Shown here piece by piece: positions 882-22,600 of a DNA stretch of 64,000 nt. Position 1 is the stretch's first letter. Each line of letters begins with the position of its first letter. Source of the stretch: Diplonema japonicum (lineage: Eukaryota; Protista; Euglenozoa: Diplonemea); contig OZ025738.1 in the NCBI GenBank assembly GCA_964019335.1, positions 62,001-126,000 on the forward strand. The letters run 5' to 3'. The translations under genes and the position numbers were made by a program. The notes beneath the pieces are model-generated. The model saw nothing but the letters and a program-made list of their open reading frames with translations, searched no databases and had not been told where the DNA came from.

Positions 882-3800
882 AGTGGCCCCGCGAGGTAAA
901 GTAAAAAGAATAAGAGGGAAGGAGGGAAGGGGGGAGGAGGAAGACATTCTTTTCTTTCAGTAAGAAGTTTTTTCTTCTTCTCCTTTTTAAGGAACGTTGG
1001 TTCTTAAAAAAAAGGGGGGGGGGGCGGGGGGGAGAGAGAAAATCCTTCGTTCGCTTGCGAACTAAACCTAAATAAAACGATAAGATTATAAATGGCGGCC
1101 TGTTTTAGGCATCCATCTCCAAAAAAAAAAAAACGTTGGTTAAAAATACATAAATAAATAGAAAAGAAACTCTTATAGCCCATCTTCTTTCTTTGTTTCT
1201 CCGGTCTTCTTAGGGCAGGAAATCTTTTTCTGGGTACCTCGCATAAGCAGTTCGCGACATATCAACATCCCAAGAGCCCAAAAGGTACCAAGTGCCCTTG
1301 GAACCGAGAGTATTACAACTAGTTCTCCTACGCACGGATTCTTAGACAAGCAAAAAAAGAAAAAAAAAAAACCCTTGTACATAAAAATCAACTAACAGGC
1401 GCTGGAGTCTTTGTTTTAGAAATAGAGAAAAAAAGAATATAAAAAAAAAAACATAGTGCAGTATTACGGTATGTTGAAAAAAAAAGAACCTTTGGGGAAA
1501 ATACTGAAACGGGTCCAGAAAATGCAACTTAACCATCTATCAACGAGCGTCTATATATAGACGATTTGAAAAAAATCTTTTACGCAAAGGGCTTTCAATG
1601 CAATACGGCCCGGCCCTTTCTTGCCGGCGGGGTCCTGCGCGGAAAATATGAAAAAAATAAACTAAATGCTGCCCTAACTTAACAAGAAAATGAAAAAATG
1701 AAAAAAAACGCCAGCCCAAATTTACCCTTAAAAATCACTTCAAAAAAAAGCGCCCGGAAAGAGGCTGGAAGAGGACGTTATGAGTGATGGCAGCACTGAT
1801 GGCTCATCCCTATTATGCAATTTTGATACAAACAGTGATTCTGATACGAATTCGACCGATTCCGAGTCACAGCAGGGTGATTGGACGGCAAAGCCGGAGC
1901 AGTTGGAAGGCATCCGGTTTCGTGAAGATCGAAATCCTTGTGGACCCTGTTTTGACATCAAAGGCTCAATGCCATACCATATATTCTCCAAATGCTCGTC
2001 CCAAACGTTATTCGGGTCATAACTTCGAACAATGTGGCAAATGCGGCTAAAAAAGGTGTCTCCCTGGATCTCGATGCTGCTTCTCTGCATACCTTCCTAG
2101 GTGTCCTTTTGTCGATGGACTTGGATATCAAGCCAGATTATTCTGATCACTGGCTCCACGTCTCTCAACTACACCCCTGGGTACGCCACCGTCATGTCAA
2201 GAGACCGCTTTTTGACTATTCTGGGAAATCTGTGTTTCCACAGCGAAACAAACAAGCGTGCTGACTTCTACTTATCGCAAAGGCCTCCCGGAGATCATGG
2301 ATGCCCCAAAGAAGCGAGGCCGCATGCCAAGGACGCTCATCCCGTGGGGACACCCAGTTCCACCAGCACGCGAGCATCCTTTGCACCACAACGTGGCATG
2401 ACATCATGCCAGCGTGCTTTCTATCGACGTTGGATGTTCCGGTGAAGTCGAATTTGACGTGTCCGCCAAAAGAGAATGAAAGCCGGAAAGGACATCCCGC
2501 CCCCCACCAAGTGCATATTTACAACACCGCAATGGGCGGAACCGACGCTGGGTGATGCTGTGACAAAACGCCATAAACGCTCCCTTATGACTTAAAAGTG
2601 GCCCCTAAAAGAGTATTTTTGTACTTGTTTGTTTTTTGTATCCCCTCTCGGGCACTTCAGGAACGATATTTTTGACAATGTTGTGGGGGTGGACCCTGCT
2701 GTGGGCACCCTCTCTCTAGAATTGGGACATCTGGAGGCATTTCCGGGGGCATATAGCCCCGGCGTTGCGCTGGAATAGCTTTTTTTGAAGTTTTGAAAAT
2801 TTACCCCCTGGTGGGCAAAAATGGTCCGTTGGTAGATGGTTAAGTTTAGATGCTGGTTCCTTAGGTATAACATTTACCGTAAAATAGCCGTAGACGGAGA
2901 GAGGGAGAGAAAGAGAGGGAAAGAGAGGGAGAGAAATAACTTCAATAGAACCGAGTGTTCCCGTCCAGCACGTATGGGTACTTCTCAAGCCAAGAATGGC
3001 GATTCTGCTTTCTTTTTCTGAAAAACCGAACCAACTTAACCTCATTGGGATTACACTCCTTCCCTCCCCGACAAAAATAAAATAAAATAATTACGATCGA
3101 GAAAAAAAAATTAAAAAACAACCACCACCCCCCCTCCCCCCGACTTGTACATTATTCTTAATCAGACACTATTCCTCTGCCGCGTTGATGGTGGGCACGC
3201 TCACACTCACCTCCTCCACCATCGTGACGCGCTTCGTGAAGTACCACTCGCATCTTGTCTCGTGCCAGTCGGGCAGGCCATACTGCTCACTCCAAGCAGA
3301 TCTCGATCTCCAGATGTACGCCTTCCCTCCAGCAAGTGCTACAAGTGTCTCTTTTTGCTTCTCCACATATTCAACATGTTCGAGAAGCTCTTCGCTCTGC
3401 TCAGCAGCAACCTCTTCCTTCAGGACACGCTTCCCTTCTTCGCGCATCGTCTTTGCCTCTTGTTCCCGCGTCTTGTCATGTTCCACAGCGTCATTACACC
3501 TGTCACCGATCCTCAGCTCAAGTGCCTCAAAGCCTATATCCCCAACCTCGTAGTGATAAGCTTCTTTTTCTTCTAACTTCTTTCCCATTCTCTGACGCTT
3601 TGCTTTCAGCGAGAAAGTATCACCCTCCCTTGTCAGACCTAGCACCGCCGCAAACTTCGCCTTCTGATACAAACGGCTTGTCGCACCCAACTCCTGGTTG
3701 CGGACAATGAGGTCGAAGGAACCGCCCCCCTCGTCCACAAGGAGAGCCACCTTGTTCCCTGACTCTGACACTGCCACCCTGCTGATCGTTCCCAGAGAGA

Positions 3801-6800
3801 AGGGGGCGGCGCTCGGAATAGCCATGCTTATCACCGCATTGTTCTCCCCGACGAGGATGCAGTGAAGGTGCGTCTCTGATAAGCGGACATCCTTCACGCT
3901 GTTGACGTGCAGGTCAAGGCTTCTCGTGTACAGCCTCTTTGCCGTTTCGCGTTGCACAACCCAGCTGTGGATGGACAGGCCGTCCTTGCTCACAACAGAC
4001 ACCACGTCGTTGGAGGTGGTCGCCGTCGCAGGGTCGATGTCCGTGTCGATGTAGAAGGTGCTGTGTTTTCGCAGCGTCCTCGTTTCTTCAGGCAGTGTGA
4101 ACACGCTGCACTCCCACCGCTTTTGTGTATCTCTGCGCCATGCCAGCACCTTGTCCACCATCGGTGTCACAGCCGACCAGACAGGGTTCTGTTCGATTTC
4201 CTCGTGCTTGTACGGATAAACCTGCTCCACAGTTCTTCTTCTATCTGACGAAACACCAGTCAACAAACTGTTAGCAGAAGGATAGTCTTCCTTGACCTCC
4301 ACAATGCCAGCATGCAGCACACCAGCTTTTGTCACCCAGCATATGCCCATGTCCTTATCAGTCTTAATTATGCACATGCTTTTGGCGTTTCCTAGGCTGC
4401 TGTCTTCTATTCCTTCCTTCATTCTTAACCTCGTGTTCAACATCCACACCATCCCATGGTCGGTGATGCCTATGATCCTGCTGGCCGCAAGTGTGCTTGT
4501 GTTGCACTCCTCTACCTTTGTCGCACGATTGTTCTTCATGTTCACGTCCACCACGTGAGGAATGCCACCCGCTACCCAGGAAACGACAAGAACGACGAAC
4601 CCGTTCCTCCACACAATTCTGCTGTGAACGCTGGAGCTGCTGACACTGTCTGGGATCTTCTGGGAAAACACAATGTCCTCACCTCCGAACCTCACCCTGT
4701 CACGGTACACCTCAGCAACATAGTCCTCGTCACTGCGACGCGTCATGGCAGCAAAGGACACCAAGCCGGGCAAGGGGCGTGAAGTCACCTTCATCTTTCC
4801 ATCTGCACCGAATTTTCCAAGGTGCGCCCTGGGGTGGCAAGTGTCCTTCAAGTCATCCTCATTAAGCAGCGTCCTATCGAATGTGTTGTCATCAAGGTGT
4901 GCCCCCTTCACGCTGACCCCACGCAAGTCCATCCCAGCAAAGGCCTCGTTTGCTGCCGACAGGATCGTCATCGCCACAGCACCAGGAACCTTGCAGAACT
5001 TTAGCTTCGACAGCTCCAAAAGGGAGTACAGAGTGTCCTTGAAACACTTCTCCGACGCCATCTTCGCCACGTACTGCCGTAAAACCACAGGAAAGCACAT
5101 CAAGTACTCCATCTTCACGTCCCAGTCCGCACATGCTGCATTGCACGTCTGAACAAGGTACTCGGAGGCCTGCTGCTCCGACACATCAAGGGCATCCGCC
5201 ACCCTCGCTTGCATCACATGACACTCCTTGCTGAATAATACACGCACCTGTTCTTCGTGTGTTAACTCCTCCTTCTGTTTCTCGTTCAGATTCGAGAACG
5301 TCGAAACGAAGAACCTCGTGGCGCAGCGGTTCAGCGGGAACTCCATGAGCTTGTCGCGGATGGCCCATGCTGTGAAAGCGTACTGAAGCCACATGTCGAC
5401 AAAACGGAACGTCTTCTTCCCCGACGGACCCAGCACTGTCCTGAGAGGGGACGAGGCGTACATGTCACGAACGAACTGCATCCTGCGCTCTTCTTCAAGG
5501 TCAAAGGTGCTGAGATCGCACTCTTCGAGGAATAGGTCGCACCTCTTATGGTAGTGGGCGATGGTCGTCTGCTGACGTGCCATCTGAAGCGCAAGGGAAC
5601 CATTGTAGTCAAACATGAGGGTCATGATGTTCCTGTCGCTCATGCTGGGGTACTTCTCGTAGAACATGTCCTTCGAGAGCATGAAGTACCTTTCTACGTT
5701 GCTTCTGAGGAAACTCAAATCAAGGACCGGCTCCTCACACAAGTTGCACATGCAGTCGCTTGTCACGTCTCTAAAGGAACGAACCAATGAAAGCGACAAA
5801 ACGCTATCATTCGCTCCCAGGTATTTCATGAACTTCTCGAATACCCGCCTCTGCCACACCGTGGCCTTGCCAGACACGATTATGCCCTCAGCTTCCTCAG
5901 TGGTTAGGTCCTCTATCCTCAGAACCTGGCACCTCGACATCATCTTTCCGTCCTTGTCGACACTCCCGAACAGTTTCTGGTGTGTGTACTGCAAGAATGC
6001 CACGTTCGCAGAGACAAGAATGATGGGGTCGCCCCATTCGCTTAGAGCATTGGACTTGCGCAATATGTTAAAGGTAAACTCCCTGTCGAGGTGCGAGTAC
6101 CCTTCGAGGATCAACACAAGCTTATAATCTTCACCGCTTTTCTCCTTCAACTTCCTGATGTTGCTGACGGTGAACCCGTATTCCTTAAGAGCCCCTTCCA
6201 CCAGCTTCTCCCTTGGATCCTTCAGCTTTGGCAAGTATATGAACACGGGGACAAGAATTTGTGCTGTCTCTTTTCCCTTTTCTTCCTTTTTGTCTTTGTA
6301 ACACTCCCACAGCCTCTTCTCCACAAGCCGAAGGAACTCTTCGCAGCCGCTCTGATTCCCGTCGAACACAAAGCTGTTGTCCTCTTCATGATTCTTCCAA
6401 CCAAGGATCCTCTTCACAAACATATCCACGGTTTCAGTTTCTTTTTCTTTAGTTGTGTTGTCGCTGAAGGAGACCTTCAAAAATGAGTATTCGTCGGTAC
6501 GCTCACATTGATGCTTCATACGCAGGATGTCATCCTCCAGCTCCCTGTGCAGCTCCAGGTACTCGTGAATATCGCTGACATCCTTCGCGATGTCCTGGAC
6601 AGCCTTCTCAATCTGTACTGCCCTGTTCAGAATGCCTGCGGTGAGAAGCATTGTGGCCCCCACCATTGTGCTTGTCCCCTCCAGGTTCCTTACGTACACG
6701 GTGATCGCCCTCTGGGCATTCTGTAGGATCTTGTCTAGGGGCTTAATTGCTTCCTTCATCACGGTCTCTCCTCGGAGTCTCAGCAGCTCGTCTACCTCGT

Positions 6801-8330
6801 CCAAGAGTTCTGATATCTTTTTCTTGTACTCTTTCGCCTGCGTGGGGAGGGTCATCCCCATGTAGTCCTTCATTCCTTTGAAAGACAGCGCCTCGTGGAG
6901 AGCTCCGACCACCTCTTCGCGATCGCACAGCAGTGAGCGCGACAGCTGCTCGCTCACATCGTGTTTCTGACTGTCTGTCAGGTACCTGCCGTCCTCGAAG
7001 GCGATGACCTCGTAGCACGCCATCACAGACCTGCACCGCAGCTTCAGCGAGGTGTTTGAGCTGGTGTCTTTGCCCAGCAGCAGGTCCGTCATTGCGGAAA
7101 CAGAACCATCGATACTCTCCAGACTCTGCCCTCTTGTATCGTTGTACCACTGGTCGATCTCTCTTATGAACTCCACTGATCCCTTACCGGCCTTTTCCGC
7201 CTGATATTTCACGGCGCCTCCTACAAGCTCTTTCGCATCCTTGATTTGCTCGGTGAGCTTCTCTGGGGACGGCCTCTCGAACGTCAAAAACTCCAGCAAG
7301 CAATCCAACAGGACATCGGTTGCTGTTGCTGGGAACTTAACGGTGTGCGTTGCTGCTGGGTCGTTCTCAACCGGGATGCGCTGGTACCACTTCTGGTCGG
7401 CCTTACCGTAAGATATCCTGCCGGTCCAGTCCCCTGCGGAGCGGACGACAGCACGGTTGAAAAGCAGCATTTCAGCCAAGTTTGCGATCCACAGCAGGGC
7501 GTGGGTGGGGTCGGCGTGCTTGAGGCTACCATCATGAATGACATCCTCGTGGAACGACTTAATGGCTGATGTAATGGTTTCCGCAAGACGCAGGCAGTCA
7601 CCGTCTCGTTTTCTATCGGTGAGGGCCTGTACTGTATTCCGCAGAAGCTCGCACTTCACGCCGAGGGTGAAGCACTCGTAGGTGGAGAACGTGATGAACC
7701 CTTCTGCCTTGACCTTTTCTATGATGCTTTCGATGACCTTCTTTCCGTCCTTTAAAAACTCTCCTACCTTTGAAATGGACCCAGGTAAGCCGGTAGCTAT
7801 GCTGAAAACGGTTCCCCCGAACTTACAAATGGACTCTATGAGCTCATTGTCTGACTGTCCTATGACCTTCACTCCAACAGACACGATGTGGAAGTCGGTG
7901 ATGGATACGACATGGCGGCGGGCCTCGTACTTGACCTCCTCCAATTCCTTGACAAGGTTCTCCAGCTTCTTTTCATTGTGGTCCTCTGGTGGGGTGGTCT
8001 TTGCAAGGCGGAACATGAGGAAGGCAGCTGAACGGTGCAGGTGTATGTTGTTGAAAGTGATGAGCTGCCGTTTGTCGCTCTCCATCGTGTCGGACATGAG
8101 GGAGATCTTCAGAATCTTGAGGATACCGTACACGGCCTCGTAAAGACCTTTCCATTCCTCTTCTTTAAAGGGCTTCTGCTCGACCCCAAACACATGCTCT
8201 TGCATCTTAAACCACTTCACAAACTCTTGTGTTGCCACCCACTTGTCCCATTGTGCTACGTCCCCTCCATACCACGCCTCTTCTAGATTCGCCAGCTTCC
8301 TTGAAAGGTCTTTCTTGAATTCTGAATCGA
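882..8330. repeat. Segmental duplication copy 1 (NLR-like gene plus 3' flank); copy 2 at ~15748-22620
   Basis: Near-identical sequence starting at cagtggccccgcgaggtaaag (882 and ~15748) and running through the CDS to DSEFKKDL. Confidence 0.9.
1533..2839 (+). mobile_element. Internally deleted piggyBac-like DNA transposon (1307 bp)
   Basis: TTAA at 1529-1532 and 2840-2843. 13-bp TIR CCATCTA(T/C)CAACG. Broken transposase motifs FLGVLLSMDL..PDYSDHW, MSRDRFLTILGNLCF and YNTAMGGTD. Empty site aatgcaac-CTAA-gtttag at ~16313-16330. Confidence 0.92.
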
Positions 8331-8541
8331 CGTCATCCTTATTATTGTTGCAGATAAACATATTCTTCACAATGCGAACGGCTGCTGCCATCTTTCCTTC
8401 TTTCTTTACAACGGACTTCTTACCCGTCTCCATTGTCGGCGCGTTGCTTGTTCCGAACCCAGCTGCTTCGCCGAAACTATCGTAGTTGTTCAGACTCGAA
8501 TCGGGCACCAGCTGTTCCAGGCACTCTTCTGAGTCCGACAT
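3169..8541 (-). CDS. NLR-like protein A (helical N-term, degenerate NACHT, pentapeptide, beta-propeller-like C-term), 1790 aa
   Basis: FVFDGNQSGCEEFLR..LW..VPVFIYLP..LVEGALKEYGFT..IRKLK..LILEGYSH and AMTILSAANEAFAGMDLRGVSVKGAHL match the NACHT-pentapeptide-WD40 architecture. The C-terminus is beta-rich. Confidence 0.75.
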   Translation of the reverse strand: MSDSEECLEQLVPDSSLNNYDSFGEAAGFGTSNAPTMETGKKSVVKKEGKMAAAVRIVKNMFICNNNKDDVDSEFKKDLSRKLANLEEAWYGGDVAQWDKWVATQEFVKWFKMQEHVFGVEQKPFKEEEWKGLYEAVYGILKILKISLMSDTMESDKRQLITFNNIHLHRSAAFLMFRLAKTTPPEDHNEKKLENLVKELEEVKYEARRHVVSITDFHIVSVGVKVIGQSDNELIESICKFGGTVFSIATGLPGSISKVGEFLKDGKKVIESIIEKVKAEGFITFSTYECFTLGVKCELLRNTVQALTDRKRDGDCLRLAETITSAIKSFHEDVIHDGSLKHADPTHALLWIANLAEMLLFNRAVVRSAGDWTGRISYGKADQKWYQRIPVENDPAATHTVKFPATATDVLLDCLLEFLTFERPSPEKLTEQIKDAKELVGGAVKYQAEKAGKGSVEFIREIDQWYNDTRGQSLESIDGSVSAMTDLLLGKDTSSNTSLKLRCRSVMACYEVIAFEDGRYLTDSQKHDVSEQLSRSLLCDREEVVGALHEALSFKGMKDYMGMTLPTQAKEYKKKISELLDEVDELLRLRGETVMKEAIKPLDKILQNAQRAITVYVRNLEGTSTMVGATMLLTAGILNRAVQIEKAVQDIAKDVSDIHEYLELHRELEDDILRMKHQCERTDEYSFLKVSFSDNTTKEKETETVDMFVKRILGWKNHEEDNSFVFDGNQSGCEEFLRLVEKRLWECYKDKKEEKGKETAQILVPVFIYLPKLKDPREKLVEGALKEYGFTVSNIRKLKEKSGEDYKLVLILEGYSHLDREFTFNILRKSNALSEWGDPIILVSANVAFLQYTHQKLFGSVDKDGKMMSRCQVLRIEDLTTEEAEGIIVSGKATVWQRRVFEKFMKYLGANDSVLSLSLVRSFRDVTSDCMCNLCEEPVLDLSFLRSNVERYFMLSKDMFYEKYPSMSDRNIMTLMFDYNGSLALQMARQQTTIAHYHKRCDLFLEECDLSTFDLEEERRMQFVRDMYASSPLRTVLGPSGKKTFRFVDMWLQYAFTAWAIRDKLMEFPLNRCATRFFVSTFSNLNEKQKEELTHEEQVRVLFSKECHVMQARVADALDVSEQQASEYLVQTCNAACADWDVKMEYLMCFPVVLRQYVAKMASEKCFKDTLYSLLELSKLKFCKVPGAVAMTILSAANEAFAGMDLRGVSVKGAHLDDNTFDRTLLNEDDLKDTCHPRAHLGKFGADGKMKVTSRPLPGLVSFAAMTRRSDEDYVAEVYRDRVRFGGEDIVFSQKIPDSVSSSSVHSRIVWRNGFVVLVVSWVAGGIPHVVDVNMKNNRATKVEECNTSTLAASRIIGITDHGMVWMLNTRLRMKEGIEDSSLGNAKSMCIIKTDKDMGICWVTKAGVLHAGIVEVKEDYPSANSLLTGVSSDRRRTVEQVYPYKHEEIEQNPVWSAVTPMVDKVLAWRRDTQKRWECSVFTLPEETRTLRKHSTFYIDTDIDPATATTSNDVVSVVSKDGLSIHSWVVQRETAKRLYTRSLDLHVNSVKDVRLSETHLHCILVGENNAVISMAIPSAAPFSLGTISRVAVSESGNKVALLVDEGGGSFDLIVRNQELGATSRLYQKAKFAAVLGLTREGDTFSLKAKRQRMGKKLEEKEAYHYEVGDIGFEALELRIGDRCNDAVEHDKTREQEAKTMREEGKRVLKEEVAAEQSEELLEHVEYVEKQKETLVALAGGKAYIWRSRSAWSEQYGLPDWHETRCEWYFTKRVTMVEEVSVSVPTINAAEE

Positions 8542-8702
8542 CTTTTCTCTTCTTTTTTCTTTTCTTTTTTCTCTCGTTTTTTCTTTTGTCCTCCCCCTCT
8601 CCCCTTCCCCTGATTATGTGGCTTCTTTGGTGCAAAATTAAAAACAAACAAAAAAAAAGGAGGGCTTTGTTAATTAACGCAAAAAAAAGAAGAAGAAAGA
8701 AG

Positions 8703-9305
8703 AATGACTTTGGTTGCTTATAAACCGCCTGGCGTACAAGCAACTGCAGGCGCAGTCTACTTGATTACAGGGGGTGCTCCTCGGCCGAGCAGTAGCTTCT
8801 TCTGCGTTCCGCGCTGTGTCCTTAATGCGTGGTGTTCTCCTCCATGTCCGCTACCAGCACTGACAAGAGAGTTGATGAGGACCGCTGACAAGGGGCACCC
8901 TTGTAGAATGCCATTTGTCACTTCAAAGGCGTCTCCCACTCCATTAGGAAGTGACAGGTTGGCGTGAACGTGTCGTGGTCCCGCTATGCATAAGCGTAGT
9001 CCTAGTTCCTCAACCAGCCTCAGGGATAGCTCCTGTGGCACTGTATCGAAACATTTTTGGAAATCTACAGCGACCCCATGTAACTGTAATCCTCCAAGTA
9101 TTGCTGCTTCAACCGGTGTCAGTTGCATAACAAAAGAATAACTCGTCGACAGCTCAGCGAGCACATCATCACAGCCATGGCCTGGTCGGAACCCGTGCCG
9201 GAATGCTATCCCTTATCCACTTTTCCTGCCAGAAGAGCACTCCCTTCAGCCTCACGCATGCCCACAATCTATATACGACACTTGTGACTGTGATCGGCCT
9301 GTGGT
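8703..9305 (-). mobile_element. Degraded LINE reverse transcriptase fragment joined to a LINE-like 3'-end repeat
   Basis: DFQKCFDTVPQ and NGILQGCPLSAVLIN, plus frameshifted RPITVTS/HGFRP remnants, all homologous to the RTs at 50-61 kb. Confidence 0.9.
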
Positions 9306-10533
9306 AACTGAAATGGTTTTAAGTTAGGATGAAGAAGCGAAAAAATAGGTAAAAAGGGGGGGTGGAAAAGAATAAATACTGCATACGAAAACAGAGAGTC
9401 GAATAAAAGAGGGAAAAAGTGACTGACATCCTCAAGAGGAGCCTCCCACGTACCAGGAATTAAGCAGAGGTTGCTTCCATGGCCCGTATCATCGCCGGAA
9501 AGAATAATGAAAATAACGGAACGAAGTGAAGTAGGAAAAGAGAAAAGAGGCCTGTGGTAAAGAATTAGGATGAAAGGCACGACTTCTTTTGCACAATAAT
9601 GGCACAAGAGGCATAAAGCGGGGCTAATGCGGTGCTGCGAGTAGGGTCGCACCCCCGATGCCTTGCGTCTTCACCAGAACGGTTTGTATCGAGACCTTTT
9701 TGACCTTGGGGAGCCCACTGCTACGGGTGGAGTCTGCTGAATCGCTAGCATTGCCATAACGGTCGCCCGAGGGAGAGCAGCCTCACACACGGTTTTCCCT
9801 GCTTTAACATAGTGCACGTAAACCCCTTTCCCGCCTTTTGTACCGATCCCAACAAATGCCACATAAAGCCCTCCTCTATAGAACTCGAACCCGGGAAACA
9901 TGTGATAATTGGGTACGAAACAGTGATTTGTTGCTGATGCAGTTCAAGACTGAAACTCGAGAGGAAAGGAATGTGAGTAGCTCACCCTAAAGTCTAAAAA
10001 CAACAAAAGGAGCGCCCCTCGTGAAACTATTAAACTATGATGAGGTGGGAGGAAAACGAGAATGAATGGGGATGGGGATGAAACTGGGGGGGAGCCGGGA
10101 TGGTCAGGACTTACTTTACAGGACTTCCAATACCATGTGGCCGGTATTGGACCTTCTGAAAAGTTCTTTGTACCCAAAAGGGGGGAAGAAGAAGAAGAAG
10201 AAGGAGAAGAATATCCGGGGTTTTTGTTCCTGAGGGTGCCGCTCCTCAGTACCCTCTGTTTCTTGTCAAATATATAGGGGTGGGTATGTGGGGGCTTTTT
10301 TTCTTTCACACTTTTCATTCGCTCCCAGCTGCCTTGATCGGCTTTGCTACGTCGGCGGGATGGTTCTTTTTTCTTTTTCTTTCTGCGAGAAACAGGATCG
10401 TTACAGGAACGTTATTATCTGTTCTTCACGCCATCGAGCTGTTCGTTCATTTCTTTCTCTCTTTTTCACAACACAAGAAAAAGCAGGAAAATATCTACAC
10501 GTGCACGGGGGAAAAGATTCTACAACTCACGCT

Positions 10534-13500
10534 TTACTCTGTGTTGCTGTTTTGTGTCACGTCACCGTCGCTGAGAGCCTTCTTCACATCTGCCTTTCCC
10601 TCCGTGATGAGGATGTGTAATGCGTCGGTGTGTCCGTTACTAGCCGCTCTGCTATACGGGGTAATACCGTAGTTGTTGGCCCTGTTCACATCTGCCCTTC
10701 CTTCCGCGATGAGGACACGTAATGAGTCAGTGTGTCCATTATGAGCCGCCATAAAACACGGGGTAATACTGTCTATGTTGGCCCTGTTCACATCTGCCCT
10801 CCCCTCCGTGATGAGGATACGTAATGAGTCAGCGTGTCCATTCTGAGCCGCAACGAAACACGGGGTAATACCGTCGTTGTCGGCCTTGTTCACATCTGCC
10901 TTCCCCTCCTTGATGAGGATACGTAATGAGTCAGTGTGTCCATTCTGAGCCGCCATAAAACACGGAGTAATACTGTCTATGTCGGCCTTGTTCACATCTG
11001 CCTTCCCCTCCGTGATGAGGATACGTAATGAGTCAGTGTGTCCATTCTGTGCCGCAACGAAACACGGGGTAAAACTGTCGTTGTCAGCCTTGTTCACATC
11101 TGCCTTCCCCTCCATGATGAGGATACGTAATGAGTCAGCGTGTCCATTCTCAGCCGCAACGAAACACGGGGTAATACTGTCGTTGTCGGCCTTGTTCACA
11201 TCTGCCTTCCCCTCCATGATGAGGACACGTAATGAGTCAGCGTGTCCATTCTGTGCCGCAACGAAACACGGGGTAATACCGTCGTTGTTGGCCTTGTTCA
11301 CATCTGCCTTTCCTTCAGTGATAAGGATACGTAATGAGTCAGCGTATCCATTATAAGCCGCTATGTAACACGGGGTGGCACTGTCGTTGTTGGCCCTGTT
11401 CACATCTGCCTTCCCCTCCGTGATGAGGATGCGTAATTCGTCAGCATGTCCACTATGAGCAGCAATGAAACACGGGGTAGTACCGTCGTTTTCTGCCTTG
11501 TCCACATCTGCCTTTCCCTCCGTGATGAGGATACGTAATGAGTCAGCGTGTCCACTTCGAGCCGCCATGAAGCACGGGGTAGTATCGTCGTTGTTGGCCT
11601 TGTTCACGTCAACCTTTCCCTCCGTGATGAGGATACGTAATACGTCAGCGTGTCCATTCTGAGCCGCAATGAGACACGGGGTAGCACCGTTGCTGTTGGC
11701 CTTGTTCACATCTGCCCTTCCTTCCGTGATGAGGATACGTAATGAGTCAGCGTGTCCATTCTGAGCCGCAACGAAACACGGGGTACTACCGTCGTTGTAG
11801 GCCTTGTTCACATCTGCCTTTCCTTCCATGATGAGGATGCGTAACGCGTCAGCGTGTCCATTCTGTGCCGCAACGAAACACGGGGTAATACTGTCGTTGT
11901 CGGCCTTGTTCACATCTGCCTTTCCTTCCGTGATGAGGATACGTAATGAGTCAGCGTGTCCATTATAAGCCGCTATGAAACACGGGGTAGCACCGTCGTC
12001 TTCTGCCTTGTTCACATCAACTTTTCCCTCCATGATGAGGATACGTAATGTGTCAACGTGTCCATTCTGAGCCGCCATGAAACACGGGGTAAAACTGTCG
12101 TTGTTCACATCTGCCTTTCCTTCCGTGATGAGGACGTGTAATGAGTCAGCGTGTCCATTCTGAGCCGCTATGTAACACGGGGTAATACTGTCGCAATCGG
12201 CCTTGTTCACATCTGCCTTCCCCTCCGTGATGAGGACACGTAATGAGTCAGCGTGCCCATTCTGAGCCGCAACGAAACACGGGGTAATACTGTCGCAACT
12301 GGCGTTCACATCTGCCTTCCCCTCCGTGATGAGGATACGCAATGCGTCAGCGTCTCCATTCTGAGCCGCCATGAAACACGGGGTAGTACTGTCGTTGTTG
12401 GCCTTGTTCACATTTGCCTTTCCCTCCGTGATGAGGATACGTAATGAGTCAGCGTGTCCATTCTGAGCCGCCATGAAACACGGGGTAGTACCGTTGTTTC
12501 TTGCCTTGTCCACATCTGCCTTTCCTTCAGTGATGAGGACACGCAGTGAGTCAGCGTGTCCATTATCAGCCGCAACGAAACACGGGGAAATATTGTTGCA
12601 ACCGGCCTTGTTCACATCTGCCTTTCCCTCCATGATAAGGATACGTAATGGGTCAGCGTGCCCATTCTGAGCCGCCACCATACACGGGGTAGTACCGTCG
12701 TTGTTGGCCTTGTTCACATCTGCCTTTCCCTCCGTGATGAGGATACGTAATGAGTCAGCGTGTCCATTCTGAGCCGCCATGAAACACGGGGTAGCACCGC
12801 GGCTGTCGGCCTTGTTCACATCTGCCTTTCCTTCAGTGATGAGGATACGTAATGAGTCAGCGTGCCCATTCTGAGCCGCAATGAAACACGGGGTAATATT
12901 GTCGCAAGCGTCCTTGTTCACATCTGCCCTCCCCTCCATGATGAGGATACGTAATGAGTCAGCGTGTCCATTCTGAGCCGCCATGAAACACGGGGTAGTA
13001 CCGTTGCTGTTGGCCTTGTTCACATCTGCCTTTCCCTCCGTGATGAGGATGCGTAATGAGTCAGCGTGCCCACTATGAGCCGCTATGAAACACGGGGTAA
13101 TACTGTATATGTCAGCCTTGTTCACATCAACCTTTCCTTCAGTGATGAGGATGCGCAATGCGTCCACGCAGTCGCGTTCAGCGGCAACAGAGCACGCAGT
13201 GCCGCCAAACGCATCCACCGTATCCGCCGCCAGCCTCCCAGAGAGGAGGACATCCTTCAGAAGGTCAGCCCGATTCCTTGCGGCCGCCGCATGAAGCACT
13301 GTCCACCCTTGACGCGGTCCCTCTTCCTCGTTCGCTCCCCAAAACCTGTCGCCGAGCACCTGCACCACCTTGTCGAATACAGCCCGCTTGCAAGAACACG
13401 CAAGAAGCCCGACACCCGCTGTGTGAAGTTCCTTTGGTACCCCAGCAAGGTCCGCTCCCTTGCTCAGCAGAACTACCGCACTCTTCTCGTGGCTCCTGTC

Positions 13501-14901
13501 CTTGTTCATCCGCAACACTGCTGAGAGCGAAGCGTTCAGAGCCTCAGAGTGAGCTGTGGGTGACAGGGACAGGTTGGCACAGCACAGCGACACCACCTGC
13601 TCGTTGTGCTCCAACTCTGCCGCCTCCTGAAGAACCGTCTTGCCGACTTCCACAACAGGCATTGTCGTGCTGAGCGGGTAGTCTACAAACCTTCCTTCAC
13701 GTGTCACCGGATGGAGTTCAAAGCTTCTATTTATCGTGAGATTCGTCTTGATCGTATGGAGGAGCTTCGCGTTGCGGACACGCTCCACCTGTGTCATGAC
13801 GTCTCCAAGCCTGCCCCAGTGATGGAAGTCGATTTCGTGCAGCTCCACCACAACCACGCGACGCATGCTTGTGTCGAGAGCCACCTCCAGCAGACGCATC
13901 ACACCGATGTCAGGGCGCCCCACCACCCGGAACTGGGTGTTCGCTGCGATCAGAACCTCCTTCTCCTCGGGGTACATGCTGAACCGAGCGATGCTCCGCC
14001 CAGTCTTAACCCGAAGAATGAGGATCGTCCCCTGAACCTCTTCGTCCCGACCGCCGCCACGCGTCTTCCCAAGGAAGTCCTTCACCACCCCAGGGCTCTC
14101 AGTTGCACTCGTGGGGTGCGGCATCGTCACCACCGCCCCCATAGAGTACAGCGACTCACTCACCCGGAAGTCAATTGCACGGAACACGGTCCCCTCGTAC
14201 TTCGGCTGCGACATCATTGCTCGGTGCAGGGAATAGGCGAAGTCCTTCATCGGCTCATAGCGCTCCCGCTCCCCACGGAACGCCACCTCACGCATCGCCT
14301 TGTTCACCCCGTAGCACAAGGGGCTATCCAGACTGTACAGCCGAAGGTACGGCTCCGACTTCCCCTCTACCTGCTGCACCGCCCACTCCGCAGCACCCTT
14401 CGCATCACCCTTCGCAGTCATCGCACTCCCCATCGCAGCCTCCACCGTCGCCAGCATCGGCCTTGAACACGACGCACCTTTGAAGAACTCGCTCCACCCT
14501 CGGTCCACGTCGATCTCGCCGACCCCGTCGCTGTACCGGCTCACTACTCCCTCATTCGCTGCCACCACCCTTCCTCCAGCCACCTTTTTTATTTCTCTAT
14601 TTTCTTTTTTACTTTTTCTTTATACCTTGAACGCTTTCGCCGCCTTCTGAAGCTCTTCACGCGCCTCCGACACCAGTGATGACACGCTGTCCCCCACACC
14701 GCGCTCGTTGTTGCGCTTCAGGAGCCTCTGCATCACAGCAATCACGCTGTGGCACAGTGCGTCGTGCCACTTCCCCATCGCCGTGTCCAGCTCCACCTCG
14801 ATGGTGGTGGTTGCTGTACCCCCCACGCTGCTCGCCAACTGCCCACGCAGCTGCTCCACCGCTTCCCACGCTATTTCTACAGCTCCCTCTCCCGCCGTCA
14901 T
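10534..14901 (-). CDS. ADP-ribosyltransferase (R-S-E clade)-ankyrin repeat protein; exons 14901-14626 and 14583-10534, ~1441 aa
   Basis: ART motifs VFRA, TSAT and EEKEVL at ~13920-14350, followed by an ankyrin array. A phase-0 GT..AG intron at 14625-14584 joins the 93-aa ORF to the 1349-aa ORF. Confidence 0.88.
10590..13135 (-). repeat. 25 tandem ~102-bp (34-aa) ankyrin repeats
   Basis: Consensus ADVNKAxxxxxTPCFxAAQNGHADSLRILITEGK, counted from the translation. Two units carry small in-frame deletions. Confidence 0.95.
14584..14625 (-). other. 42-nt A-rich cis-intron
   Basis: AAG|GTATAAAG...AAAAAAG|GTG. Removal deletes an in-frame TAA and keeps the frame. Confidence 0.8.
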
Positions 14902-16622: not shown

Positions 16623-19600
16623 CTATTCCTCTGCCGCGTTGATGGTGGGCACGCTCACACTCACCTCCTCCACCATCGTGACGCGCTTCGTGAAGTACCA
16701 CTTGTATCTTGTCTCGTGCCAGTCGGGCAGGCCATACTGCTCACTCAAAGCGGATATCGATCTCCAGATGTACGCCTTCCCTCCAGCAAGTGCTACAAGT
16801 GTCTTTCCTTGCTTCTCCACATATTCAACATGTTCGAGAAGCTCTTCGCTCTGCTCAGCAGCAACCTCTTCCTTCAGGACACGCTTCCCTTCTTCACGCA
16901 TCGTCTTTGCCTCTTGTTCCCGCGTCTTGTCACATGCCGCACAAGGGAGAGGCCTGTCACCGATCCTCAGCTCAAGTGCCTCAAGGCCTATATCCCCAAC
17001 CTCGTAGTGATAAGCTTCTTTTTCTTCTAACTTCTTTCCCATTCTCTGACGCTTTGCTTTCAGCGAGAAAGTATCACCCTCCCTTGTCAGACCTAGCACC
17101 GCCGCAAACTTCGCCTTCTGATACAAACGGCTTGTCGCACCCAACTCCTGGTTGCGGACAATGAGGTCGAAGGAACCGCCCCCCTCGTCCACAAGGAGAG
17201 CCACCTTGTTCCCTGACTCTGACACTGCCACCCTGCTGATCGTTCCCAGAGAGAAGGGGGCGGCGCTCGGAATAGCCATGCTTATCACCGCATTGTTCTC
17301 CCCGACGAGGATGCAGTGAAGGTGCGTCTCTGATAAGCGGACATCCTTCACGCTGTTGACGTGCAGGTCAAGGCTTCTCGTGTACAGCCTCTTTGCCGTT
17401 TCGCGTTGCACAACCCAGCTGTGGATGGACAGGCCGTCCTTGCTCACAACAGACACCACGTCGTTGGAGGTGGTCGCCGTCGCAGGGTCGATGTCCGTGT
17501 CGATGTAGAAGGTGCTGTGTTTTCGCAGCGTCCTCGTTTCTTCAGGCAGTGTGAACACGCTGCACTCCCACCGCTTTTGTGTATCTCTGCGCCATGCCAG
17601 CACCTTGTCCACCATCGGTGTCACAGCCGACCAGACAGGGTTCTGTTCGATTTCCTCGTGCTTGTACGGATAAACCTGCTCCACAGTTCTTCTTCTATCT
17701 GACGAAACACCAGTCAACAAACTGTTAGCAGAAGGATAGTCTTCCTTGACCTCCACAATGCCAGCATGCAGCACACCAGCTTTTGTCACCCAGCATATGC
17801 CCATGTCCTTATCAGTCTTAATTATGCACATGCTTTTGGCGTTTCCTAGGCTGCTGTCTTCTATTCCTTCCTTCATTCTTAACCTCGTGTTCAACATCCA
17901 CACCATCCCATGGTCGGTGATGCCTATGATCCTGCTGGCCGCAAGTGTGCTTGTGTTGCACTCCTCTACCTTTGTCGCACGATTGTTCTTCATGTTCACG
18001 TCCACCACGTGAGGAATGCCACCCGCTACCCAGGAAACGACAAGAACGACGAACCCGTTCCTCCACACAATTCTGCTGTGAACGCTGGAGCTGCTGACAC
18101 TGTCTGGGATCTTCTGGGAAAACACAATGTCCTCACCTCCGAACCTCACCCTGTCACGGTACACCTCAGCAACATAGTCCTCGTCACTGCGACGCGTCAT
18201 GGCAGCAAAGGACACCAAGCCGGGCAAGGGGCGTGAAGTCACCTTCATCTTTCCATCTGCACCGAATTTTCCAAGGTGCGCCCTGGGGTGGCAAGTGTCC
18301 TTCAAGTCATCCTCATTAAGCAGCGTCCTATCGAATGTGTTGTCATCAAGGTGTGCCCCCTTCACGCTGACCCCACGCAAGTCCATCCCAGCAAAGGCCT
18401 CGTTTGCTGCCGACAGGATCGTCATCGCCACAGCACCAGGAACCTTGCAGAACTTTAGCTTCGACAGCTCCAAAAGGGAGTACAGAGTGTCCTTGAAACA
18501 CTTCTCCGACGCCATCTTCGCCACGTACTGCCGTAAAACCACAGGAAAGCACATCAAGTACTCCATCTTCACGTCCCAGTCCGCACATGCTGCATTGCAC
18601 GTCTGAACAAGGTACTCGGAGGCCTGCTGCTCCGACACATCAAGGGCATCCGCCACCCTCGCTTGCATCACATGACACTCCTTGCTGAATAATACACGCA
18701 CCTGTTCTTCGTGTGTTAACTCCTCCTTCTGTTTCTCGTTCAGATTCGAGAACGTCGAAACGAAGAACCTCGTGGCGCAGCGGTTCAGCGGGAACTCCAT
18801 GAGCTTGTCGCGGATGGCCCATGCTGTGAAAGCGTACTGAAGCCACATGTCGACAAAACGGAACGTCTTCTTCCCCGACGGACCCAGCACTGTCCTGAGA
18901 GGGGACGAGGCGTACATGTCACGAACGAACTGCATCCTGCGCTCTTCTTCAAGGTCAAAGGTGCTGAGATCGCACTCTTCGAGGAATAGGTCGCACCTCT
19001 TATGGTAGTGGGCGATGGTCGTCTGCTGACGTGCCATCTGAAGCGCAAGGGAACCATTGTAGTCAAACATGAGGGTCATGATGTTCCTGTCGCTCATGCT
19101 GGGGTACTTCTCGTAGAACATGTCCTTCGAGAGCATGAAGTACCTTTCTACGTTGCTTCTGAGGAAACTCAAATCAAGGACCGGCTCCTCACACAAGTCG
19201 TACATGCAGCTTCTGATTGTCTTGTGCAGAGCGCTGCTGCTGGGACTATTGCGGAAGGCGTTGACCTTGTCAAGCTTACCGAAGGTGAACGTGCCAGTAT
19301 GAGAATGGAACGTTTTAACGATAGCTATAACTATACTATGGCTGACGGGCCCTGAGAGAATGTCGTAAACGCCATGCAGACCACCCCTACCTCCATCTTT
19401 GAAAACCTCCAATAATATCTTCAAGCGGCCGAAGACAGAGATGCATGACCTCAGGTAGTTTATGTCGCTGCTGTCCTCCTTGCACCTCAACAAGATGCTA
19501 TCTAGGCATTTCTCAAAGCGGTCTGCAATGCATTGCAAGTCACTGTCGAAGCGAGGTAACCTGCAGTCGGTGAGAAACCCTACAACGGCTTCCAACTGAC

Positions 19601-22600
19601 GCGTCGTCAGACTGGAAATGAAGCAACCGACATTCTTGGAAACAAAGTCTGCTAAGTGCGACCGCTCTGTTGAGTGCTGGAGCCAGCGAATCTGCATACC
19701 TTCCGACTTGTTATCCCGCTGATCCTTCTGATCAAGACAGCCACTACTGTTCTGCTGCGTGTGCTCTTGTATTATCTGTACGCCCATGACGTCCTCTACC
19801 TGAAGACGTTCCTGTAGTACACTTAATAACCCCTCCTCCTCCTCAAGACGCTGCTCTATGTTGCCTCGAGCCTGCGTGCGACCAAGATAGCTACCCCATG
19901 AGGTCAAGCGGTCTATCGTCCGGAACTCCTCCACAGCTACTTCTTTGAGCTGTTTCCACAAGACCTCGGAGTACTCTTCAGCCGTCTTGTCAGCCTTGAG
20001 AACGCTGTCGCTTGTCCCGTCTCTAAAGGAACGAACTAATGAAAGCGACAAGACACCTTGCCTTTCGGGGTCAAGATTCGTTCCTAGGTATTTCATGAAC
20101 TTCTCGAAGACCAAGGAGACCTTGAGCATCTGCCACACCGAGGTCTTGCCAAACTCAATGATGCCCTTAGCTTCGCCAGTGTCTAGGTCTTCTATTCTCA
20201 GAACCTGGCACCTCGACATCATCTTTCCGTCCTTGTCGACACTCCCGAACAGTTCCTGGGGTGTGTACTGCAAGAATGCGACGTTCGCAGAGACAAGAAT
20301 GATGGGGTCGCCCCATTCGCTTAGAGCATTGGACTTGCGCAATATATTAAAGGTAAATTCCCTGTCGAGGTGCGAGTACCCTTCGAGGATCAACACAAGC
20401 TTGTAGTCCTCACCGCTTTTCTCTTTCAGCCTCCTGATGTTGCTGACGGTGAACCCGTATTCCTTAAGAGCCCCTTCCACCAGCTTCTCCCTTGGATCCT
20501 TCAGCTTTGGCAAGTATATGAACACAGGAACAAGATCTTGTGCCGCCTCTTCTTCCTCTTCTTTCTTTTTGTCTTTGTAACACTCCCACAGCCTCTTCTC
20601 CACAAGCCGAAGGAACTCTTCGCAGCCGCTCTGATTCCCGTCGAACACAAAGCTGTTGTCCTCTTCATGATTCTTCCAACCAAGGATCCTCTTCACAAAC
20701 CCATCCACGGTTTCAGTTTCTTTTTCTTTAGTTGTGTTGTCGCTGAAGGAGACCTTCAAAAATGAGTATTCATCGGTACGCACACGATGATGCTTCATGC
20801 GCAGGATGTCATCCTCCAGCTCCCTGTGCAGCTCCAGGTACTCGTGAATATCGCTGACATCCTTCGCGATGTCCTGAACAGCCTTCTCAATCTGTACTGC
20901 CCTGTTCAGAATGCCTGCGGTGAGAAGCATTGTGGCCCCCACCATTGTGCTTGTCCCCTCCAGGTTCCTTACGTACACGGTGATCGCCCTCTGGGCATTC
21001 TGTAGGATCTTGTCTAGGGGCTTAATTGCTTCCTTCATCACAGTCTCTCCTCGGAGTCTCAGCAGCTCGTCTACCTCGTCCAAGAGTTCTGATATCTTTT
21101 TCTTGTACTCTTTCGCCTGCGTGGGGAGGGTCATCCCCATGTAGTCCTTCATTCCTTTGAAAGACAGCGCCTCGTGGAGAGCTCCGACCACCTCTTCGCG
21201 ATCGCACAGTAGTGAGCGCGACAGCTGCTCGCTCACATCGTGTTTCTGACTGTCTGTCAGGTACCTGCCGTCCTCGAAGGCGATGACCTCGTAGCACGCC
21301 ATCACAGACCTGCACCGCAGCTTCAGCGAGGTGTTTGAGCTGGTGTCTTTGCCCAGCAGCAGGTCCGTCATTGCGGAAACAGAACCATCGATACTCTCCA
21401 GACTCTGCCCACTCTGCCCTCTTGTATCGTTGTACCACTGGTCGATCTCTCTTATGAACTCCACTGATCCCTTACCGGCCTTTTCCGCCTGATATTTCAC
21501 GGCGCCTCCTACAAGCTCTTTCGCATCCTTGATTTGCTCGGTGAGCTTCTCTGGGGACGGCCTCTCGAACGTCAAAAACTCCAGCAAGCAATCCAACAGG
21601 ACATCGGTTGCTGTTGCTGGGAACTTAACGGTGTGCGTTGCTGCTGGGTCGTTCTCAACCGGGATGCGCTGGTACCACTTCTGGTCGGCCTTACCGTAAG
21701 ATATCCTGCCGGTCCAGTCCCCTGCGGAGCGGACGACAGCACGGTTGAAAAGCAGCATTTCAGCCAAGTTTGCGATCCACAGCAGGGCGTGGGTGGGGTC
21801 GGCGTGCTTGAGGCTACCATCATGAATGACATCCTCGTGGAACGACTTAATGGCTGATGTAATGGTTTCCGCAAGACGCAGGCAGTCACCGTCTCGTTTT
21901 CTATCGGTGAGGGCCTGTACTGTATTCCGCAGAAGCTCGCACTTCACGCCGAGGGTGAAGCACTCGTAGGTGGAGAACGTGATGAACCCTTCTGCCTTGA
22001 CCTTTTCTATGATGCTTTCGATGACCTTCTTTCCGTCCTTTAAAAACTCTCCTACCTTTGAAATGGACCCAGGTAAGCCGGTAGCTATGCTGAAAACGGT
22101 TCCCCCGAACTTACAAATGGACTCTATGAGCTCATTGTCTGACTGTCCTATGACCTTCACTCCAACAGACACGATGTGGAAGTCGGTGATGGATACGACA
22201 TGGCGGCGGGCCTCGTACTTGACCTCCTCCAATTCCTTGACAAGGTTCTCCAGCTTCTTTTCATTGTGGTCCTCTGGTGGGGTGGTCTTTGCAAGGCGGA
22301 ACATGAGGAAGGCAGCTGAACGGTGCAGGTGTATGTTGTTGAAAGTGATGAGCTGCCGTTTGTCGCTCTCCATCGTGTCGGACATGAGGGAGATCTTCAG
22401 AATCTTGAGGATACCGTACACGGCCTCGTAAAGACCTTTCCATTCCTCTTCTTTAAAGGGCTTCTGCTCGACCCCAAACACATGCTCTTGCATCTTAAAC
22501 CACTTCACAAACTCTTGTGTTGCCACCCACTTGTCCCATTGTGCTACGTCCCCTCCATACCACGCCTCTTCTAGATTCGCCAGCTTCCTTGAAAGGTCTT

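Follow-up and report, generated by a model that had tools for sequence, protein, structure and literature searches.

Binding-face-variable ankyrin arrays on an expanded family of putative mono-ADP-ribosyltransferases in the diplonemid Diplonema japonicum

Among the described ADP-ribosyltransferases (ARTs) that carry the R-S-ExE catalytic motifs are the vertebrate ecto-ARTs (ARTC, PF01129; rat ART2.2, PDB 1gxy), which are secreted or glycosylphosphatidylinositol-anchored single-domain enzymes, and bacterial toxins and effectors (Vis, 4xzj; Tre1, 6drh; HopU1; SpvB; ExoS/T), which are secreted or injected and lack ankyrin arrays. Eukaryotic mono-ARTs nest within the bacterial toxin ARTs, according to the relevant part of the survey by Aravind and colleagues (PMC3417536). 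Here we describe an ART–ankyrin gene at positions 10534–14901, on the minus strand, of a 64,000-nt stretch of Diplonema japonicum DNA (assembly GCA_964019335.1, contig OZ025738.1, positions 62,001–126,000; hereafter the window). Its predicted protein shares with the ecto-ARTs the Pfam family, the R-S-ExE motifs and the fold (Foldseek E 1.4e-6), but it has no signal peptide, is only ~16–21% identical to them and continues at its C-terminal end into an ankyrin solenoid more than 1000 residues long. Among bacterial ARTs, Vis is the best sequence match and Tre1 the best structural match; in contrast to those proteins, the window gene is nuclear, eukaryotic and intron-bearing, and belongs to a family of ~20 copies.

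Three further systems invite comparison through their repeats. Tankyrases follow the same logic, in that ankyrin repeats bring partners to an ART-fold enzyme within one chain, and the ankyrin part of our structural model matches tankyrase ARC structures with a Z of 13.1. They are established members of the H-Y-E (PARP) clade that make poly-ADP-ribose and have five conserved ARCs and a SAM domain (see also PMC9688111), whereas the window protein is of the R-S-E clade and its array is internally near-identical and variable in length. No PARP or SAM match was found by Pfam in the exon products, and we rejected a tankyrase identity on both grounds. Fungal NOD-like receptors (NLRs) with conserved ANK, TPR or WD repeats are the second parallel. 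Their ANK units have 33–34 residues, high internal conservation and variable repeat number, and the sites that vary or are under positive selection map to the concave face, within the inner helix and the hairpin (repeat-domain sections of Dyrka et al. 2014, PMC4986451). The window array resembles these domains in having internally conserved units (at a lower mean identity, see below), unit numbers that differ between paralogs, and a variable face, as an initial annotation made from the sequence had supposed when it likened the two modes of diversification (compare the same sections of PMC4986451). That annotation also spoke of 'an NLR without the NTPase', which is apt for the repeats but not for the protein: the enzyme is N-terminal with the array directly after it, there is no NOD, NACHT or NB-ARC NTPase, and a Pfam search of each exon product at E up to 1 gives no NTPase family, so we do not classify it as an NLR. 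The third comparison is with designed ankyrin repeat proteins (DARPins), whose randomised positions had been equated with the variable ones here. The equation holds in part: the overlap presumably comprises DARPin positions 2, 3, 5 and 13, all of which vary, but the array also varies at 1, 4, 9 and 10, and the equivalents of DARPin 33 and 26 are nearly fixed. The units differ as well, with 34 residues in the window array against 33 in DARPins, and TPC where DARPins have TPLH.

Both parts of the protein are familiar; for their combination as an expanded family with near-identical, binding-face-variable arrays, we found no description. Full-text literature searches, whose scope did not extend to gene-family tables in supplements, gave no account of diplonemid ADP-ribosyltransferases. 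The text of the D. papillatum genome paper contains neither 'ankyrin' nor 'ADP-ribos', and the D. japonicum genome note does not contain 'ankyrin'. In the literature on Bodo saltans and ADP-ribosyltransferases, as far as the available text goes, the relevant statement is limited to ARTs of Bodo saltans virus (PMC9503650).

An R-S-E ADP-ribosyltransferase joined to an ankyrin solenoid

The products of exon 1 and exon 2 were searched separately rather than as a spliced protein, and residue numbers count from the start of the exon 2 open reading frame (ORF). The Pfam profile PF01129 matches the full exon 2 ORF with 31.1 bits and its first 328 aa with 34.7 bits (cut-off 22.3), spanning residues 81–222 (window 13918–14343). 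The R (VFRA), S (TSAT) and ExE (EKE) motif set read by the initial annotation is present where it had been placed, with R135 of GTVFRA at 14179–14181, S159 of PTSAT at 14107–14109, and E207 and E209 of EEKEV at 13963–13965 and 13957–13959. A phmmer search of PDB sequences matched the Vis toxin (4xzj, E 7.9e-5), whose R, STS and ExE motifs align with GTVFRA, PTSAT and EEKEV. HMMER recovered 363 relatives at E <= 0.001 from 1.84 billion representatives (82 at <= 1e-10 and 13 at <= 1e-30), and an alignment of 57 family sequences shows no variation at S202 and E209, and at least 90% conservation at R98, R135, S159, G185, E207 and F218. The catalytic motifs are retained in all 18 copies examined; the third STS residue is T in the window copy and S in the other 17. 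Across the family, the ratio of non-synonymous to synonymous substitution rates (dN/dS) of the ART domain has a median of 0.27 over 147 pairs, which denotes purifying selection.

Structural modelling gave the same picture. The AlphaFold2 model of exon 2 residues 1–480, which comprises the ART, linker and ankyrin parts only, has a predicted local distance difference test score (pLDDT) of 91.9 and a predicted template modelling score (pTM) of 0.89, and pLDDT is high throughout the linker and the degenerate repeats. Foldseek returned 61 PDB matches to the model at E <= 0.001, ranks 1–31 all being R-S-E ARTs, with Vis, ART2.2, XopAI, Tre1, SpvB, HopU1, ExoS and C3 as top matches. In VIA-align, the ART fold matches had Z values of 13–16 overall, including Tre1 (Z 15.9, root mean square deviation 2.4, 157 aligned) and ART2.2 (Z 15.7, 3.0, 192 aligned). 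By profile, motifs and predicted fold, the domain is an ADP-ribosyltransferase of the R-S-E clade. Model residues 316–480 match ankyrin and DARPin chains (Z ~13, VIA-align), and only a short structured linker therefore appears to separate the enzyme from the start of the solenoid.

An ExE motif, as in iota toxin and ART2, distinguishes arginine specificity from the QxE of C3, and the characterised R-S-E ARTs among the best structural matches are, we assume, arginine-specific. We infer from the ExE motif that the window enzyme would modify arginine, and the domain is probably catalytically active.

In a separate observation on the ART domain (window 13954–14115), the window copy alone has M-Y for R-F two residues ahead of the ExE loop. 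This position varies (R, H, S, M) in the closest paralogs and is the site of ART substrate-specificity loops.

Array variation falls on the predicted binding face

Tandem Repeats Finder describes the array as a period of 102 nt in 25.5 copies with 84% matches. Tiling resolves it into 25 units (23 of 34 aa, one of 33 aa and one of 31 aa) plus a 28-aa terminal part, so the initial count of 25 ankyrin repeats stands. Pfam recognises it through PF00023 (E 9.6e-131, 24 stretches) and PF12796 (E 6.4e-196), and its units share a mean pairwise identity of 85.4% at nucleotide and 75.4% at amino acid level.

Variation among the units is concentrated in a few columns. Tables confined to the window array use 23 of the 25 units, excluding those of 33 and 31 aa. 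In these full-length units, 8 of the 34 columns, namely hairpin positions 1–5 and helix-1 positions 9, 10 and 13, hold 84 of the 127 non-consensus residues (chi-square against a uniform spread, p = 2e-22). The initial annotation had located the variation in the hairpin and first helix, as we find, and had quoted five hairpins (DIYSI, NSNGT, GCNNI, EDDGA and YNDGS), every one of which occurs in the tiling. It had also named an even spread as the outcome that would speak against its reading; the eight columns, 23.5% of all, instead contain 65.8% of the non-synonymous pairwise differences and 21.2% of the synonymous ones. Because the synonymous differences are evenly spread, the concentration of variation is not mutational. 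Of the variable positions, 9, 10 and 13 belong to helix 1 (positions 7–13, modelled as the helix at 463–469), and their i, i+1, i+4 spacing places them on one helix face; from general knowledge of the ankyrin fold, we take the variable face to be the concave groove.

We then compared non-synonymous with synonymous differences per site (pN/pS). Within the window gene, the eight columns together have a pN/pS of 1.28, hairpin positions 1–5 taken alone 2.10, and the remaining columns 0.30. For a family-wide estimate, we used 206 in-register units from 16 genes (210 candidates, of which 4 out of register were dropped), arranged as 103 disjoint nearest-neighbour pairs. Hairpin positions 1–5 gave 1.28 over all 103 pairs (95% interval 0.94–1.9) and 1.76 (95% interval 1.03–4.2) over the 61 pairs with at most 12 differences, the framework giving 0.34 and 0.28, respectively; parsimony gave 0.42 for the window-gene framework (S = 32, N = 42). 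The hairpins of the 30 closest pairs differ by 15 non-synonymous changes and 0 synonymous ones. On these ratios, the array framework is clearly under purifying selection, and the binding-face positions appear to change at the neutral rate or slightly faster, which suggests but does not establish positive selection on them. The per-site comparison proposed in the initial annotation thus separates hairpin (1.28–2.10) from framework (~0.3), with diversifying selection suggestive only.

A family of paralogs with separately built arrays

PF01129 has 49 matches in the genome. At the level of non-repeat DNA, ~20 loci match over more than 1.2 kb at 85–95% identity, in addition to fragments, and these close loci are concentrated on six scaffolds. 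No allelic second copy of the window gene was found in the assembly, the nearest copy being 95% identical. Arrays among the paralogs contain about 6 to 31 in-register units. The units of the window gene are not collinear with those of other genes and have no one-to-one counterparts, save for the terminal cap, whose counterpart is unit 16 of paralog L025 (6 nt differences); the arrays therefore appear to have been built separately in each gene, and the description of the array as reshufflable agrees with both the length range and the lack of collinearity. Three of the 18 copies are broken (L013, L024 and L030), and L029 is frameshifted in exon 1.

Beyond this genome, the nearest homologues are EukProt transcripts labelled Hpha, at 51–60% identity, a label that we take to denote Hemistasia phaeocysticola, a diplonemid. 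These transcripts, of 836–949 aa, share the ART–linker–ankyrin layout of the window gene, with TPC-type units, and the linker is conserved in them. Their N-termini show no detectable BLASTP homology to exon 1 (best E 0.010, in a non-collinear region). In four transcripts from Hemistasia and other sources (P0003, P0152, P0006 and P0004), a zinc-knuckle-like insert of the form CxxC...H...C separates the N-terminal motif from the ART; the window gene and its paralogs lack this insert. Among 60 long database relatives, the ART profile is found in 55 and ankyrin profiles in 34; others bear kinase, LRR, SPRY, SAM, RCC1 or WWE domains. A search of IMG/VR with six peptide patterns, which finds close relatives only, gave no viral relatives.

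Within the D. japonicum genome, ART domains are fused to ankyrin repeats, to C1 plus ankyrin, and to AAA_5/AAA_16 ATPase domains. Individual cases include L040 (C16:607000–615000), whose frame exceeds 3300 aa and encodes AAA_5 and AAA_16 ahead of the ART; L038 (C69), with ART, C1 and ankyrin; and L036 (C15), an open frame with an ART and a tubulin-type GTPase domain that may be two genes. Six ADP-ribosyl-glycohydrolase genes are also present in the genome.

Gene structure

The initial annotation had treated 10534–14901 as the span of one gene. Both exons do lie within it (Table 1), but it is not a single open frame: the ORF list gives two same-frame ORFs on the minus strand, one of 93 codons from the ATG at 14901 and one of 1349 codons (14583–10534) that starts without an ATG, and the in-frame TAA that splits them rules out a single ORF. 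The origin of this stop was resolved by comparing the exon junction in 17 close paralogs of the same genome (the locus at C105:188171, with a 235-aa frame, and a later-found C93 locus lie outside this comparison). Eight of the 17 (L013–L019 and L026) are uninterrupted, reading TTCAAG followed directly by GTGGCTGG, so that exon 1 is continuous with the ART exon. The other nine have an A-rich insert precisely between AAG and GTGG, which starts with GT and ends with AG in eight; the exception, L030, begins with GA and is also broken elsewhere. At this AAG/GT site, the insert lengths are 42 (window), 45, 51, 43, 55, 45, 55 and 29 nt, with 949 nt in L027, whose flanking frames are open on both sides. 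The 43- and 55-nt inserts, in three paralogs, are not divisible by three; L021 (43 nt) and L023 (55 nt) nevertheless keep open frames before and after the insert. Because same-site inserts of non-triplet length lie between open frames, we interpret the 42-nt insert, from this comparison, as a predicted phase-0 spliceosomal intron and reject a nonsense mutation or pseudogene as the source of the TAA. It agrees with the intron norm for D. japonicum given in the relevant part of PMC12621601 (median 41 nt, 98.3% GT–AG, a G/GTATG 5' site and, ahead of the 3' site, an unusual tract rich in A). The locus is thus an apparently intact two-exon nuclear gene with a predicted product of 92 + 1349 residues.

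Table 1. Predicted features of the ART–ankyrin gene, in window coordinates
Feature	Positions	Strand	Basis and remarks
Exon 1	14626..14901	-	ATG 14901-14899, 92 codons ending TTC AAG; N-terminal helical region
Intron, phase 0, 42 nt, A-rich, GTATAA...AAAAAAG	14584..14625	-	Paralog comparison; contains in-frame TAA 14620-14622
Exon 2 start and ART catalytic domain (R-S-ExE clade)	13774..14583	-	Pfam, alignment, model
Structured linker with small beta elements (~255-312), then degenerate N-terminal ankyrin-like repeats (~316-475)	13165..13773	-	Model
Tandem array of 25 near-identical ankyrin units (102 nt, 34 aa)	10577..13164	-	Tandem Repeats Finder, tiling
C-terminal end of capping partial repeat, short tail, TAA stop 10534-10536	10534..10576	-	ORF list, tiling

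The 28-aa terminal partial repeat starts upstream of 10577. The exon 1 product has no significant Pfam match. Hydropathy shows no signal peptide or membrane segment, upholding the initial annotation on the former (maxima of 1.16 for a Kyte–Doolittle 9-aa window over the first 40 residues, and of 1.06 for a 19-aa window over exon 2).

One site in one family thus holds a short A-rich intron in most copies, a 949-nt one in L027 and none in eight. The insert is bounded on each side by AAGGT, a pattern compatible with gain of the intron and duplication of its target site, or with its precise loss. Retroposition was rejected as the origin of the intron-less paralogs, none of which has a spliced-leader relic upstream.

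Genomic context

All window ORFs of at least 250 aa with a domain assignment are on the minus strand, as is the ART–ankyrin gene, which sits in a polycistron-like, one-strand gene run. It lies between giant paralogous ORFs at 3169–8541, 16623–22670 and 24776–31831 (1790, 2015 and 2351 aa; A, B and C), of which A and B are 95–98% identical and C about 50–56%; the genome has ~13 genes of this giant family. The giants have no PDB sequence relative, and Pfam gives no family for A and one sub-threshold match for C. Their putative NACHT-like parts gave only chance-level Pfam matches at E up to 10, and an AlphaFold2 model from a 3-sequence alignment reached a pLDDT of 39.5, which neither confirms nor refutes the NACHT-like label. 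Two loci, one in the window (3169–14901) and one at C96:306–317k (305800–317300), have an ART–ankyrin gene directly upstream of a giant gene, with ART copies ~72% and giants ~35% identical between the loci. Only these 2 of the ~20 family members adjoin a giant gene; rough arithmetic gives a chance expectation of ~0.1 adjacencies, and shared residence in variable regions could account for the pairing.

Mobile elements are also present. A reverse-transcriptase fragment (8757–9164) lies just downstream of the ART–ankyrin gene, and non-LTR retroelements with endonuclease and reverse transcriptase occur at 50165–54250 and 56800–62124, with an OTU protease gene between the two retroelement ORFs. A 16-base motif from the 3' end of the spliced leader occurs 252 times in the genome, against 0 for a reversed-pattern control. 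Loci L033–L035 have one leader-like sequence in common ahead of the motif and unrelated sequence after it; some copies form 16-nt tandems, and many lie close to contig ends. These copies may be dispersed leader-bearing insertions or leader-associated elements. Rfam found no family in the window, and PADLOC gave weak matches only (E 0.003–0.005).

Possible functions of the family

The explanation that we favour, although we place it slightly short of an even chance, is a family of target-recruiting arginine mono-ARTs with diversifying binding arrays, each paralog being aimed at a different target. Each member would be a cytosolic protein in which an N-terminal helical segment is followed by an R-S-ExE mono-ART and a conserved linker that leads rigidly into one long ankyrin solenoid, made in the window protein of a few degenerate repeats and 25 near-identical ones. 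The concave face of the solenoid (hairpin 1–5; helix-1 9, 10 and 13) would most likely be the target-binding module that holds a protein partner, and that partner, or something attached to it, would be ADP-ribosylated by the ART domain. The ~20 paralogs, with arrays built per gene through unit duplication and loss and differing mainly at binding-face positions, would each direct the same chemistry to a different target. Target binding by the array is suggested by this pattern of variation, and the arena may be one of biological conflict, with viruses, bacterial endosymbionts, or prey or hosts on the other side. A virus–host arena for the ART family in Euglenozoa is plausible by analogy, because Bodo saltans virus encodes 12 ARTs, including an ecto-ART that looks exchanged with hosts and host-derived, as described in the relevant part of PMC9503650. 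The initial annotation spoke of an NAD-consuming effector, which is an assumption; direct modification of the bound target is the simpler reading, because the close structural relatives are protein arginine mono-ADP-ribosyltransferases.

Several observations weigh against this explanation. The position set taken a priori from DARPins has a pN/pS of 0.74 (0.59–0.94) over the 103 pairs, below 1, and the sets with pN/pS above 1 were partly picked after the variation had been seen. Parsimony on a FastTree tree of 134 unique units gave N = 159 and S = 8 for the hairpin, a count inflated because multi-nucleotide codon changes were scored as single non-synonymous events; scaled to the global synonymous rate, the sites give 0.8–1.7. 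Mean unit identity, at 75% aa, is under the criterion, at least 85% over at least 100 residues, that defines strongly conserved repeat units in NLRs of fungi; by our own averaging rather than the scoring of Dyrka et al., the window array has 75.4% and that of paralog L021 86.6% aa. The window copy itself may be under relaxed constraint, as judged from 8 unique non-synonymous changes against 1 unique synonymous change in its ART core (among them T for S as the third residue of STS, and two residues immediately ahead of ExE) and from dN/dS of 0.64–1.96 to its nearest paralogs. Finally, the protein collection holds no D. japonicum protein of the ART–ankyrin family: exact look-up found 0 of 7 intron-less paralog proteins, and a search with the first 200 aa of L019 found nothing.

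A narrower proposal, which we regard as unlikely, is that the ~20 genes are an NTPase-free, single-chain recognition–effector repertoire that diversifies its arrays by duplication, loss and substitution and tags non-self protein with ADP-ribose, a restriction-factor-like immunity. Its targets would be a viral protein or a Holosporaceae effector, and it would possibly act with the neighbouring giant STAND-like genes.

We judge it similarly improbable that this is an ordinary regulatory enzyme family, in which the solenoid is a scaffold or localisation module and the variation reflects drift at exposed positions and concerted evolution of a young array. In ankyrin proteins generally, no positions are under less constraint than the exposed ones of the hairpin, and the variable positions are close to neutral here (pN/pS 0.97, 0.79–1.21, over the 103 pairs, in addition to the rate relative to global dS given above); the ADP-ribosyl hydrolase genes would allow a reversible cycle, and the ART domains of this genome have many unrelated fusion partners. 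However, ~20 recent paralogs with independent arrays of very different length are hard to square with housekeeping, the hairpins of close pairs show the 15-to-0 excess, and the broken and frameshifted copies indicate a turnover typical of fast-evolving families.

A sensor that works like an NLR without an NTPase has a lower probability still. Here, ligand binding would free or assemble the ART, leading to cell arrest or death by NAD consumption or modification of self proteins. The repeat anatomy matches fungal NLR repeat domains, the family is expanded with some copies decaying, the gene sits among three giants in a pairing seen again at C96:306–317k, and an AAA_5/AAA_16–ART protein is encoded elsewhere in the genome. 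Against this, the protein has no NTPase or oligomerisation domain, its nearest structural relatives modify protein arginine rather than deplete NAD, and the ART and first repeats are modelled confidently as a single body with no hint of an autoinhibited state. The NACHT-like nature of the giants is also not confirmed by either Pfam or modelling, and few family members lie beside one.

Export of the protein as an effector or toxin, delivered into prey, host or endosymbionts, where the array would bind a foreign target for the ART to modify, we consider very unlikely. Its closest solved folds include the secreted bacterial proteins Tre1, HopU1, XopAI, ExoS, SpvB and Vis, but the protein lacks a signal peptide and membrane segment, is large (~1440 residues), and is encoded by a gene with a native intron in a host polycistron-like run. 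To our knowledge, no delivery signals have been described for diplonemids. In favour of such a role, invasion of prey or hosts is presumed for diplonemids, and D. japonicum has two Holosporaceae endosymbionts (PMC13598402). Least probable of all is that the window copy is a recent duplicate heading to decay within a possibly functional family: its 8:1 ART-core changes, its dN/dS of 1.96 to the nearest paralog at a dS of 0.026, the missing transcript-derived protein and the visibly broken family members point that way, but both exons are open over their 92 + 1349 codons with intact splice-site dinucleotides, its own array framework is under purifying selection by pairwise and parsimony estimates, R, the first S and both E are kept, and 8:1 is by simple arithmetic not significantly off the roughly 3:1 neutral expectation.

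Should the arrays of these putative target-recruiting mono-ARTs indeed select targets, nature would have in this family a counterpart to engineered binder–enzyme fusions. The family provides a workable system for testing whether recognition by hypervariable repeat arrays is possible without a STAND NTPase, and interest would rise if array alleles proved polymorphic or if paralogs bound different targets. If true, this reading would make the family a candidate conflict system in very abundant, little-studied ocean protists, in a species that harbours intracellular bacteria.

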